Assembly: GCA_039096225.1 (NCBI GenBank)
Contig: JBBPEB010000015.1
Location: 2,356,001 to 2,420,000 of the forward strand
DNA from: Blastocystis sp. Blastoise
Lineage: Eukaryota; Protista; Bigyra: Opalinata
Direction: 5' to 3'
DNA length: 64,000 nt
Below the pieces are notes generated by a model, which saw nothing but the letters and a program-made list of their open reading frames with translations, was not told the DNA's origin and did not search any database. How positions within the stretch are numbered: position 1 is the first letter of the stretch; every line of letters begins with the position of its first letter. Position numbers and translations under genes: made by a program. Positions 47,495-64,000 of this stretch are shown one piece after another.

Positions 47495-47567
47495 GCCTCG
47501 ATAGCTCAGTCGGGAGAGCGTATGACTGAAGATCATAAGGTCCCTGGTTCGATCCCGGGTCAAGGCG
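47495..47567 (+). tRNA. trnF: tRNA-Phe (GAA)
   Basis: 73-nt cloverleaf GCCTCGA TA GCTC AGTCGGGA GAGC G TATGA CT GAA GA TCATA AGGTC CCTGG TTCGATC CCGGG TCAAGGC G; A and B boxes intact; anticodon 47528-47530; one C5-A68 mismatch. Confidence 0.95.
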
Positions 47568-47570
47568 TAA

Positions 47571-61000: not shown

Positions 61001-64000
61001 ATTTCCTTGTAAACCAGATTTCTTTGTTGGTTATAATGAAATACGAAATCATGAGAAAGGAAAAGTATGGAAATATTTAAATGAAATACGTGAATGTTTT
61101 AATCATATAATATTAATGTTATCTTGGAATAGATCTATTAATCATTCTAATTTAACAAGATTAGATGCATTCACTTTATTCTTTCCTAATATAGAAAAGA
61201 ATGCTATAGATTCATTATTACGTAAGATAAGAAGTAATTATAGACAAATAAATAGAGATACTAATATTCCTACTTTAGGTAATAGAAATAATAATCGTAT
61301 TCCAAATAATCAAAGATTAAGAAATAATCAAATACAAAATGGTTATATTAATATTAATAATACTAATAATAATAATAATATTGATATTGATATAAATAAT
61401 TCTAATATTAATTCTAATAATAATAGTGATAATAATTCCAATAATAATGAATCAAATGAAATGGAAATAGATAATGAAATAAATAATTCTAATAATACTA
61501 ATATTATTAATAATATTTCTAATTCTTCTAATTCTTCTACTTCTAATAGTCATATATCAAATAATAATAATAATAATAATCATAATAATATATCTTCTCA
61601 ATCTTCACTAGATTCTGATGTTGATATAGATATGAATTTAAATAATTCTAATTCTAATAATAATAATTCTAATAATAATAGAAGAAATAATAATAATAGA
61701 AATAATACAAGACCTTCTAATATTCCTACTTTACAAACTAGAATAAATCATAATCCTAGAACAGTTCAAGGTAGAAGAACAAGAGAATTAGAATCAAATA
61801 ATAATAATGATAATATGAATAATGATAATGAAATGGAAATAGAAAATGAAGAAGAAAGAAATAATAATAATAATATTAGAAATACTAATGATAATAATAA
61901 TAATCCTAATAATAATAATACAGAAATAGATTTAATATCAACTTATTCAGAAAATAATATTATTAATATTATTAATAGATCAAATAATCTTCATTATACT
62001 TCAAATGTGAAAAGAAGATTATCTAGATTAGCTTTAAAGCGTTGGTCTAATAATAAAACAATAAATCGATTTAATAGATTTGTAGAAGAGAGATTATATG
62101 ATCATATTCGATGTTACCCTATAGAAGATTCAAATCATAATCCTACTATGACTCCTGAATTAATAGAATCATTTAATAAGAGTTGTGAATATGTATTTAA
62201 TGAAATATATAGATGGATATCACAATGTGATAGAGGAAGAATAAATCATAATGATAGATATAATAATAATAATAGAGATGTAGGTAGTTCAGCTAATGAA
62301 GATCGTAATTATCATAATGAAACTAGAAATAGAAATCATCATTTTCATGATAATAATAGATTTAATAATAATAATAATAATAGAAGATATATTAGAAGAT
62401 ATAATAATAATAGAAATCAAAGAAGATATAATAATAATAATAGAAATACTAGAAGATATAATAATAATAATAATAATAATAATAATAATAGAAATCATAA
62501 TAATAATAATAATAATAATAATAGAAATACTAGAAATTTAAATACAAATAGAAATGAAAGAAGAATGAATAATGAAATGGAAATTGAAACTGAATCTGAG
62601 AATACTAATAATACTAATACTAATTCTAATCAAATTAATTCTTCTAATTCTAATACTTCTAATAATGATACTCAATCAGAAAGAGAATCTAATATTAATA
62701 ATTCTAATAATAATCGTTCTAATACTCATTCTAATAATAATTCTAATAATCGTTCTAATACTCATTCTAATAATAATTCTAATAATAATAATAGATATAA
62801 TAGAAATAGAAATAATAATTATCATTCAAATAATAATAATAATAGATTTAATTATAATATAAATGATGAGAATGAATTGAATGAAGAATTAATAAATTCA
62901 GAAATTCAATATTATAAGAAAGTATCTAAACTTCTTAATGAATGTATTCAATCTATTAATACATTTACTTCTCAAATATCTATGAATAATAATAATTCCA
63001 TTTCTATTCAATCTTCTATAAATATATTTATAGGTAAATTAGTAGAAATATATGAAATGAATACAGAAGAACCTATATTAGGTACTATATTAGAAAATCT
63101 AAATATATCAAATATTAATGAATCTATTAATATAATGAATATAGATTTATGGAATGATAGTAAGAATTCATTAAATCATTTTTATGATAATTCAAAAAGA
63201 ATGATTGAAGATTTATTAAAGAATAAAGAGAATATAAAGAATCATAGAGAAGCATCTAAAATAAGAAAAGATTTTGAAATTAATTCTAAATCTACTCTTC
63301 GTTCTCAAATATGGAATAATAATATTGGAGAACATTGTACTATTCCTCCTGATACTCTTACTCAATTATATTCTGATTTATATTCCTCTCATGAATCTAA
63401 TACTAATTCTACTTCTACTCCTCCTCCTTTATGGTTATCTTCTAATATTTCTACTATACCTGAAAATTCTTCTTCTTTCAATATTATTAAATTTAAAGAT
63501 GTTACTAGAATTCTAAGGAAACTTCCTAATAATAGTACTCCTGGTGCTAATGGAATTCCTTATGAAATCTATAAAAGAAGTACTTCTGCTAGATTATTAT
63601 TAACTTATATCTTAGAAGTATGTAGATATAATGAAATTACTTTAAATAGTTGGAATGAATCTATTACTTGGTTATTAGATAAAGGAAAAGATGATAAATC
63701 TTCTTTAAATAATTGGAGACCTTTATGTCTTCAAAATGTAGAATCAAAAATATTTTCTTCTCTTATAGTAGATTATATTAATAATATTAATAATTCTTAT
63801 CATATTATATCTTCTTATCAAAAAGGATTTACTCCTAGTGTAGCTGGTTGTGAAGATCTTAATTATATTCTTAGTAATATCATAGCTGATTTTAAATTAA
63901 AAAGACTAAGAAATTCTAATTTATTAATTAATTTCTTAGATTTAGAAAAAGCTTATGATACTGTTCCTCATAAGATATTATTAAATATTCTTCATATGAT
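58075..64000 (+). mobile_element. Second tandem copy of the same retrotransposon (cut by the window end)
   Basis: Colinear with and highly similar to 47568-53590. Confidence 0.93.
58107..64000 (+). CDS. Retrotransposon polyprotein, copy 2, open to the window end (partial)
   Basis: ATG at 58107; sampled offsets versus copy 1 differ by multiples of 3; reads [12 protein letters not shown] in frame; no stop-terminated ORF in this frame appears in the track. Confidence 0.88.
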   Translation, partial: MKHKDHNGGPLEFKLYTKNIFPKWEKYLYRFQIWKSQFRDDGLQQLYQKSLSNYHSSSLRKLSLKRSTYVFSWKFTQNKKFQICSQNSKIIRKMKNSNFSGSSSTPFYFSNREIKNFKASNNGIYTSSAIESQDPNHKNFAHLLNRRSEVVRKLASKVPSTTDKGPHYKKPCFSSKAQKRERMVKYIMKKVLSKNIKIGIRDGSSYSTSNNGLRLDSSMVSKNRENGDFKEVSKNDENGVESKIMMNTNGCDDINTSMVPNERKEAKNDDENNIYIDVINENTNMNNNIIDINNDENNININYIDNNNDENNIVHNYVKNNKNIDNKNMDKNTNEIGTNMKDNDNNYIESDDSSYVPDSEMDDVDSYTSSSYYTSDMDESEDINAFQKDEIVKIDDISNENNNINNPLNILMNDLLNDVNKYIDKNEYIDKYKYENKISNDIDNKNMNNISNTPITPNNTITPITPITPSIPITPSTPNTSITPSTPNTSITPSTTISPNTPIIPSTVITLITPSTANTSITPNTPINVSTPITSSTPITSGTSITPITHITSITPITPLDPITPITPSTSITPINPITPITPITPITPIIPITTITPINPITPITPITPSTPITPITPITPVTTINHLYINSHLNVNTNNNNNNNNTINRDTDINRFNNINKLSNNNNNNNNNSLDINSSTNINESTNINNNMIIDSSSSDNNNNNSTDIDINNTSIYDNDIDSTDINIIDITEDETDAMNTFDDHEDNNNNNNNNNNNNNNNNNNNNNNNNNNNNNNNNNNRRNRSDSISSSSSSSSSSSSSSSSSGMDIEESNINNNNNDIDIDNMPSIIPSIIRNLNRNTNSIQQTNNNNNTSPPNNNQTINQSIPNNNINNTITNIDLDLSLNNHINNPITPNYLHIPIQDRIYPYNLDNLDLPTGIIENNMMNTLFNSNRRVLTLDSSIYSINSIPNNIPNFPTECNWIFPCKPDFFVGYNEIRNHEKGKVWKYLNEIRECFNHIILMLSWNRSINHSNLTRLDAFTLFFPNIEKNAIDSLLRKIRSNYRQINRDTNIPTLGNRNNNRIPNNQRLRNNQIQNGYININNTNNNNNIDIDINNSNINSNNNSDNNSNNNESNEMEIDNEINNSNNTNIINNISNSSNSSTSNSHISNNNNNNNHNNISSQSSLDSDVDIDMNLNNSNSNNNNSNNNRRNNNNRNNTRPSNIPTLQTRINHNPRTVQGRRTRELESNNNNDNMNNDNEMEIENEEERNNNNNIRNTNDNNNNPNNNNTEIDLISTYSENNIINIINRSNNLHYTSNVKRRLSRLALKRWSNNKTINRFNRFVEERLYDHIRCYPIEDSNHNPTMTPELIESFNKSCEYVFNEIYRWISQCDRGRINHNDRYNNNNRDVGSSANEDRNYHNETRNRNHHFHDNNRFNNNNNNRRYIRRYNNNRNQRRYNNNNRNTRRYNNNNNNNNNNRNHNNNNNNNNRNTRNLNTNRNERRMNNEMEIETESENTNNTNTNSNQINSSNSNTSNNDTQSERESNINNSNNNRSNTHSNNNSNNRSNTHSNNNSNNNNRYNRNRNNNYHSNNNNNRFNYNINDENELNEELINSEIQYYKKVSKLLNECIQSINTFTSQISMNNNNSISIQSSINIFIGKLVEIYEMNTEEPILGTILENLNISNINESINIMNIDLWNDSKNSLNHFYDNSKRMIEDLLKNKENIKNHREASKIRKDFEINSKSTLRSQIWNNNIGEHCTIPPDTLTQLYSDLYSSHESNTNSTSTPPPLWLSSNISTIPENSSSFNIIKFKDVTRILRKLPNNSTPGANGIPYEIYKRSTSARLLLTYILEVCRYNEITLNSWNESITWLLDKGKDDKSSLNNWRPLCLQNVESKIFSSLIVDYINNINNSYHIISSYQKGFTPSVAGCEDLNYILSNIIADFKLKRLRNSNLLINFLDLEKAYDTVPHKILLNILHM

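Follow-up and report, generated by a model that had tools for sequence, protein, structure and literature searches.

We analysed a 64,000-nucleotide stretch of the Blastocystis sp. Blastoise genome (C4:2356001-2420000, on contig JBBPEB010000015.1; hereafter the window, numbered from its first base) that carries two head-to-tail copies of a retrotransposon behind a tRNA-Phe gene. The assembly searched for further copies comprised 33.34 Mb in 34 contigs. The element is in all likelihood a site-specific retrotransposon without long terminal repeats (LTRs; a non-LTR element) and with a restriction-like endonuclease (RLE), which would use the tRNA-Phe(GAA) gene as its only insertion site, duplicate 23 bp of the gene by staggered nicks, and thereby rebuild its target and accumulate in arrays.

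The single tRNA in the window was identified by ARAGORN as tRNA-Phe(GAA) at 47495-47567, in agreement with Rfam (RF00005, 61.6 bits), and its sequence equals that of the six other genomic tRNA-Phe genes. This complete gene, which we regard as the regenerated target, is followed at the base after nt 73 by copy 1 of the element (47568-58051, 10,484 bp; all element features given here lie on the plus strand). The last bases of copy 1, ...GTTTAAATTAAT, run directly into tRNA sequence: the segment 58040-58085 reads ...cttgtttaaattaat followed by TGGTTCGATCCCGGGTCAAGGCG, which is tRNA nt 51-73, and then taattttatt..., where the leader of the element recurs. The 23-bp repeat is found upstream at 47545-47567, as the end of the whole gene, and downstream at 58052-58074, B box included, between copies 1 and 2; the latter is one of eight loose 23-mers in the genome. 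An order of complete tRNA-Phe, element, tRNA nt 51-73 and a second element had been described in a first-pass annotation made from the sequence alone, and it was borne out in every particular.

The genome contains seven tRNA-Phe genes, all identical. Six are occupied, with the first base of the element directly after nt 73, and only the gene at C25:44575-44647 is empty. Eight occurrences were found for the last 402 bp of the element (98-100% identity) and eight for its first 333 bp (95-100%), in addition to one diverged 5' end (89%) and one that ends after 120 bp. The 23-mer occurs 15 times in the genome, seven times in whole genes and eight times directly behind element 3' ends, with no control hits. 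All eight 3' ends thus abut nt 51, at the 5' edge of the B box, or once nt 50; the exceptional junction, in another array, reads ...AATTAAC and then TGG, retaining the C of tRNA nt 50 where the others have T. The 5' end always abuts nt 73, and 23 bp of tRNA stand on both flanks. The first 40 nt of the tRNA occur seven times genome-wide, always in whole genes; there are no orphan 5' halves and hence no broken tRNA-Phe gene. The proposed specificity for tRNA-Phe and the survival of the complete tRNA both hold on these counts, since every loose tRNA 3' piece lies behind an element end. Tabulation of the element ends, which the same annotation had called for, placed all other genomic copies at tRNA-Phe genes too, and none at the 28S rDNA site of the R2 clade proper. 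A C5-A68 mismatch in the acceptor stem, read from the sequence, is common to all seven tRNA-Phe genes, the empty one included.

Copy 2 starts at 58075 and continues past the window end at 64000 to window-equivalent position 68141; its open reading frame (ORF), followed on locus L059, runs from 58107 to window-equivalent 66260 and encodes 2717 aa without interruption. End-to-end alignment of 58052-64000 with 47545-53587 gave 94.7% identity counting gaps, a divergence that marks them as two real copies and not an assembly duplicate. The 3' end of copy 2 is at C4:2424141, and from C4:2424142 it is followed by tRNA nt 51-73 and a native-type trailer, ATTTCTTTTTT. The trailers compared read ATTTCTTTTTTCT behind the copy 2 23-mer, ATTTCTTTTTATG at the other array end and ATTTCTTTTTATC at the empty gene; ATTTCTTTTT at two array ends is the trailer of the empty tRNA-Phe gene, so the array ends bear the native tRNA-Phe trailer. 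An end of this kind beyond the window refutes a one-off duplication. With its ORF open, copy 2 is probably a sign that the element is still active. The public RNA run X1 (share 0.07) gave only three short low-depth contigs on the stretch, from which no transcript ends could be read.

Whether the occupied loci represent separate events was judged from their flanks. Four of them share about 620 bp upstream of the tRNA at 91-96%, and the upstream flanks are otherwise unique. Among the elements next to the shared flanks similarity is 97.4-99.2%, which does not exceed their similarity to copies at unrelated loci. The loci C23:70k and C23:238k have flanks 99.2% alike and identical elements, and as this makes them a segmental duplicate, five occupied loci and not six are independent. 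Identical junctions at five independent loci, their counterparts in a second family described below, and the difference of about 5% between the window copies refute a single tandem duplication broken within the tRNA, or an assembly artefact; for either of these nothing speaks beyond the local picture, and their chance is negligible.

The head-to-tail copies found at several loci could also have arisen mainly by unequal crossing-over, or by segmental duplication, from one inserted copy. The C23 duplicate, 99% alike and with identical elements, is a case of such duplication, the two window copies fall in one subclade, and 23-bp repeats around 10-kb units invite recombination. A tree of the last 1450 bp of the element, however, groups copy A of the C15 array with the C4 copies, and copies B and C with C23 and C15:483k. 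The distance from window copy 2 to copies at other loci (1.45%) is smaller than that to copy 1 (1.80%), and the two neighbouring copies at C15:483k come from different subfamilies, 65-70% identical. Because array members interleave with copies from other loci, the arrays seem to have grown mostly by repeated insertion, and growth by crossing-over or duplication is unlikely as the main process.

Several copies show further rearrangement. C15 array copies B and D (L002 and L007) carry a different N-terminus (MVDKDHFGSGLEINGQLKK...) after the first 72 nt, which they have in common over 915 bp at 98.5%, and the C23 copies have only variant first codons of this alternative; the 5' ends of the family are therefore mosaic. 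At C23:80161 onward (L003:2045-3402) a second element copy stops after 120 nt, interrupted by a DNA transposon that begins with a CAGTG... terminal repeat and whose ORF bears a Tc1/mariner-type DDE motif (YSPELNPIE). Two element 5' ends stand behind a whole tRNA-Phe gene with the nearest reverse transcriptase (RT) or 3' end far off, 84 kb in one case (C4:1502047 vs C4:1586106) and 32 kb in the other (C23:238431 vs C23:270269); large insertions, rearrangement between copies, or unscored copies are possible explanations. The distal part of the shared 620-bp block is a dispersed repeat of about 275 bp (L045:860-1140), present at about 25 other places at 75-80% identity.

The coding region of copy 1 opens with a start codon at 47600 and is split by a frameshift. 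Its first part (47600-53545, 1981 aa) is N-rich and of low complexity, includes the N-terminal half of the RT, and ends prematurely; direct comparison with copy 2 located the break to an A-run at 53532-53537 that is one base longer in copy 1 and shifts the frame inside the RT. The second part (53583-55826, 747 aa) encodes the RT palm and thumb, a CCHC knuckle and the RLE, assigned by Pfam RVT_1 (E 1.3e-17), by R2 proteins in the PDB as the best solved relatives (9nl2, E 1.9e-21) and by a profile. The active-site YADD of copy 1 lies at 53850-53861, the CCHC knuckle at about 55131-55196, the endonuclease PD at about 55383 and K..Y at about 55503-55517. Behind the coding region follows a 2.2-kb 3' untranslated region (UTR; 55827-58051), in which a 339-bp tandem duplication (56195-56920) is private to copy 1.

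In copy 2 the RT occupies the C-terminal third of the 2717-aa ORF, with AYADD at aa 2054, as in non-LTR-type reverse transcriptases. Alignment of 17 relatives placed CPYC..H..C, RHN, RPD, DV and K..Y downstream of the RT in invariant or nearly invariant columns (invariant C78, H94, C99, R115, H116, P162, D163, K202 and Y206; C81 nearly so). The profile built from them matched R2Tg over the RT (E 5e-121) and separately over the knuckle and endonuclease region (chain residues 1142-1384, E 4e-31). The CCHC and PD-(D/E)xK motif columns and the R2Tg match identify an RLE downstream of the RT, although a PDB search with the C-terminal 308 aa alone returned only poly-N noise. The N-terminal 1981 aa had no Pfam match at E<=0.01, hence no N-terminal APE endonuclease, and no LTRs were found, the element ends sharing no repeat besides the 23-bp tRNA piece. 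The N-terminal 1700 aa are mainly low-complexity sequence with a single conserved block, aa 920-1088 (50357-50863 in copy 1), that recurs in a sister family at tRNA-Lys. This block shows 34% identity to the sister protein P0121 and lacks conserved cysteines; an AlphaFold2 prediction (aa 910-1077, two-row alignment) reached a pLDDT of 36, too low to be of use. Over the pre-RT and RT region the identity to P0121 is 42%. No C2H2 zinc-finger pattern is present in the 2717-aa ORF or in P0121; two to four such patterns occur in the more distant relatives P0122, P0124 and P0131. In a tree of 38 RTs, which held no NeSL reference sequences, the family fell outside the R2-labelled clade, beside unnamed metagenomic elements. 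Together, the RVT_1 and R2 matches and the conserved motifs CCHC, RHN, PD, (D/E)V and K..KY, with homology to the C-terminus of R2, support the assignment to RLE-bearing non-LTR retrotransposons that the first-pass annotation had made, here to the R2/NeSL-type group, and membership of this group suggests integration by target-primed reverse transcription.

Ahead of the start codon, copy 1 has a T-rich leader, TAATTTTATTTTTGTTTATTTTTTT..., at 47568-47599, which in the sequence starts at the base after tRNA nt 73. The same leader stands behind all six occupied tRNA-Phe genes, and related elements also start with a T-run. It looks like an RNA polymerase III (Pol III) terminator for the regenerated tRNA, a function that would follow from its position and composition. 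A structured RNA region of three hairpins and one closing stem was predicted across the start codon (47597-47690). The segment 47568-47700 folded with -32.4 kcal/mol (z -3.95), and none of 200 shuffled sequences was equally stable; the sister family has no comparable fold in its 5' region. Rfam scanning of 47300-58400 at E<=1 matched no family to the structured 5' region and no ribozyme or other known RNA within the element. The first approximately 200 nt (window 47568-47770; L039:1501-1700) are 90-97% conserved in a subfamily copy whose ensuing coding sequence is only 65-70% identical, and this conserved, folded segment may act as a promoter, a processing signal or a recognition element.

The search of the genome with the RT/RLE protein revealed 11 copies of the sister family, 45% identical and spaced 8.6 kb apart. 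Rfam placed a tRNA 5.5 kb upstream of the first RT in each array of this family with a scored tRNA, and reading of the junctions gave tRNA-Lys(UUU) as the target: behind the element's terminal ...GGCTAACACTT follows GGGGTTCGATCCCCCTATCAGGCG, which equals the final 24 nt of the tRNA. This 24-mer has 17 genomic occurrences, six in whole genes and 11 behind element ends. Five of the six tRNA-Lys genes are occupied, their upstream flanks all differ, and orphan tRNA-Lys halves are absent from the genome. At three of these loci the copies show 100% identity over 4.1 kb, a sign of recent activity. The leader of this family, TTTCTTTTTTAC, resembles the native trailer, (A)TTTCTTTTT. A duplication extending into the trailer was considered and rejected for the clean cases, the window array and the single-copy C33 Lys locus, in which leader and native trailer already diverge at the base that follows nt 73. 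Downstream of the sole empty tRNA-Lys gene (L072, C1:374852) and of the C10 tRNA-Lys array end (L073, C10:52459), 1.5 kb or more of flank is about 100% identical; the match begins precisely where the 24-nt tRNA piece does, and the upstream flanks differ. The pattern suggests an exchange or a duplication whose breakpoint was the insertion site of the element.

An exhaustive protein search yielded further relatives in public assemblies at 24-32% identity. In one of them (L091, 48% GC), a complete tRNA-Arg(ACG) is followed by TTTTTGCCC and the ORF, and the 3' end, ...CTTTA, is followed by TCCTGCCCAGTGCG (tRNA nt 60-73) and a native T-run trailer. In L089/L090, L093, L095 and L094, the last with two tandem copies, a tRNA 3' end stands directly ahead of a T-run leader; no tRNA was found at L092 and L097. 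For relatives cut by contig ends the tRNA end was read from the 3' part of the tRNA alone, and in these the repeat likewise appears to end at the tRNA 3' end. L089/L090 (protein P0124; 26% GC) encodes an RNase H upstream of the RT, and its flank is tRNA 3' sequence, not U2. The start of the repeat varies across lineages (nt 60, 51 or 50, no later than 42, no later than 38). Its end is nt 73 at Phe and Lys, is ambiguous by up to five T at Arg, and is followed by a T-run.

Three origins of the repeat were weighed, and under each of them the full gene is kept with its A and B boxes and a T-run behind it. Staggered nicking is the most likely of the three, a preference that we hold with moderate confidence. 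The endonuclease would nick the bottom strand in the T-stem, where reverse transcription would be primed, and the top strand would be cut 23 bp downstream at the gene end, so that fill-in would leave the 23-bp target duplication. The T-run of the leader would terminate Pol III transcription of the rebuilt tRNA and spare the host any loss, and the rebuilt site would be open to another hit, giving head-to-tail arrays. The junction that retains nt 50 fits a nick inside the tRNA, and the long duplications of LIN15_SM, reptile Utopia and R9, discussed below, provide precedent. The nick at nt 50/51 proposed in the first-pass annotation fits the sequence equally, as a deduction from the junctions; insertion at 73/74 with a tRNA-like 3' tail would give the same letters.

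Several points weigh against this reading. The same DNA results from staggered nicks, from tRNA sequence carried 5' on the RNA and from a tRNA-like 3' tail with insertion at 73/74, and a fixed stagger does not predict a repeat that ends at nt 73 wherever its end could be read but starts at varying positions. The C23:70k/C23:238k duplication lowers the number of independent loci to five. Finally, the upstream copy in the window does not look younger, having a longer 3' branch, a frameshift and its private duplication; the earlier proposal that new copies stack in front of old ones agrees with two arrays (C15) and not clearly with the array in the window.

Annealing-type 5' joining has been proposed for R2 RNAs that retain 28S sequence. 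An analogous route here would have the RNA template carry a tRNA piece at its 5' end, as a co-transcript started in or before the upstream tRNA; both strands would be cut near nt 50/51, and the cDNA would anneal to the cut gene. If a donor tRNA and leader were copied together, the varying start and constant nt-73 end of the repeat would be automatic and no measuring device would be needed. The resemblance of the leaders to native tRNA trailers, seen in the Lys family, and the unusual conservation and structure of the first approximately 200 nt would also fit. However, Pol III would be expected to terminate at the T-runs right behind the tRNA, with no Pol II promoter known upstream; array-internal copies do not have tRNA nt 1-50 in front of them; and Rfam found no ribozyme. 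5'-truncated insertions should moreover leave halves of nt 1-50, of which the Phe and Lys families have none, although selection could have removed them. We consider a carried 5' piece somewhat unlikely.

A tRNA that was never cut is the premise of the third origin, in which the element inserts exactly at 73/74 and the 14-24-nt tRNA piece is its own 3' tail, copied from RNA. There would then be one insertion point, the gene end, in all lineages, with tail length alone varying, and all eight tails are indeed identical. The junction that retains the C of nt 50, where the others have T, instead fits formation on the target, and the 3' UTR end together with the 23-mer has no tRNA-like or stable fold (z -0.63). 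LIN15_SM, a published tRNA-specific relative, inserts inside the tRNA, and each change of target would need a new tail. A copied 3' tail is decidedly unlikely.

Beyond the choice among these origins, we tentatively propose, as a possibility that falls short of being probable, that the nt-73 end with its T-run is a conserved, selected device of a protist RLE clade and not a by-product of a fixed stagger. The tRNA 3' part would then be carried on the RNA, or the second cut would be measured from the gene end. If so, each insertion would deliver a working tRNA gene with a terminator, a small essential family could be saturated without cost (six of seven Phe genes, five of six Lys genes), and the ends of the element would be tied to tRNA gene structure or tRNA processing.

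The remainder of the window and assembly showed several unrelated features. A legumain gene at window 44782-46008 has its best named matches in Blastocystis sp. 'Blastoise' (59%) and JDR (44%). Window 22001-26000 is extremely strand-asymmetric, with a GC skew of about +0.8 and an AT skew of about +0.55 over 4 kb, and the minus-strand ORF 24004-25230 within it had no Pfam match. A long (TTTA)n microsatellite lies at window 41995-42190. A dense set of tRNA genes on contig C9 recurs in mirrored order on C12, which suggests that the assembly contains the organelle genome twice.

As a rule, a site-specific retrotransposon destroys the gene copy that it enters and persists because its target family is large. 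Target families of seven and six genes that are almost full yet complete would make this a natural example of a retrotransposon that mends the damage done by its own insertion, and a system for testing how R2-type elements position second-strand cleavage or 5' joining. The element would also explain some of the repeat structure, and of the large-scale rearrangements near tRNA genes, in new Blastocystis assemblies. R2-type proteins are under development for targeted DNA insertion, and a relative that aims at a tRNA gene yet leaves it intact may be of practical interest there.

The closest published systems are the tRNA-specific RLE elements of the NeSL clade, namely NeSL-1_TV at tRNA-Pro in Trichomonas and LIN15_SM at tRNA-Arg and LIN25_SM at tRNA-Glu in planarians (Kojima & Jurka 2015, PMC4640811). 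The Phe element resembles them as an RLE non-LTR element that is sequence-specific for one kind of tRNA and has the tRNA 3' part after its 3' end. LIN15_SM has tRNA sequence at its 5' junction as well, implying a long duplication (PMC4640811). However, the one 5' junction shown for it stops near tRNA nt 65 and the gene is not rebuilt, whereas here the repeat reaches nt 73 and a T-run follows. Of the traits of the NeSL clade, the Phe element has a small multicopy RNA gene as target and lacks N-terminal C2H2 zinc fingers. The first-pass annotation knew of no such element from this kind of protist, and the literature searched contained no paper on Blastocystis non-LTR elements at tRNA genes; a genome paper on Blastocystis sp. 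Rus-B mentions neither retrotransposons nor tRNAs (PMC12129017). The annotation's impression of novelty stands for Blastocystis as far as that literature goes and has to be narrowed for protists at large, given the Trichomonas element (PMC4640811).

Utopia, a NeSL-related element specific for U2 snRNA genes, has stramenopiles among its hosts, forms tandem insertions, and makes a 20-bp duplication in reptile families (PMC4640811). In Phytophthora an intact U2 lies upstream of it and U2 nt 39-end downstream. Like the Phe element, Utopia is an RLE element whose target is a small multicopy RNA gene; the oomycete families have an RNase H upstream of the RT, as does the relative P0124. Utopia differs in its target, U2 and not tRNA, and the intact U2 upstream was interpreted by its authors as an adjacent gene with a deletion and not as regeneration.

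With R2, which enters 28S rDNA and whose proteins are the best solved relatives, the Phe element shares the layout of RT, CCHC and RLE and a multicopy RNA gene as target. Unlike R2, its RT is only 27-28% identical, its ORF is 2.5 times longer and without zinc fingers, and it had no ribozyme match in Rfam; R2 inactivates its 28S unit, whereas the Phe element leaves its target whole. SLACS/CRE1 of trypanosomatids make a duplication of about 49 bp in spliced-leader genes. R9 of rotifers is cited (PMC5035012) as making a 126-bp target duplication. These too are RLE elements with unusually long target duplications in RNA genes, but the duplication is not known to restore a complete gene.

Transfer RNA genes also serve as safe havens in compact genomes for the dictyostelid and yeast elements TRE5/TRE3, DGLT-A, NLTR-A and Ty1/Ty3 and for Dada (PMC5006619, PMC3706591). 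TRE, DGLT and Ty elements insert beside any tRNA gene through the Pol III machinery, with an APE endonuclease or an integrase, and Dada is a DNA transposon. The Phe element instead reads one tRNA sequence, has its junctions inside or at the end of the gene, and uses an RLE, which sets it apart from the Pol III-guided class. Since tRNA-specific RLE elements and long target duplications are both published, the class itself is already known. For the tRNA-specific NeSL elements (PMC4640811), neither the near-saturation of a small gene family nor an nt-73 rule across a whole clade is reported. What appears to be new, as far as the junctions can be read, is a repeat that rebuilds the whole gene, a terminator-like T-run supplied with it, and two small families nearly saturated without a broken gene; the recurrence of this plan in several distant lineages, and the lack of zinc fingers in the Phe and Lys families, likewise appear to be new.

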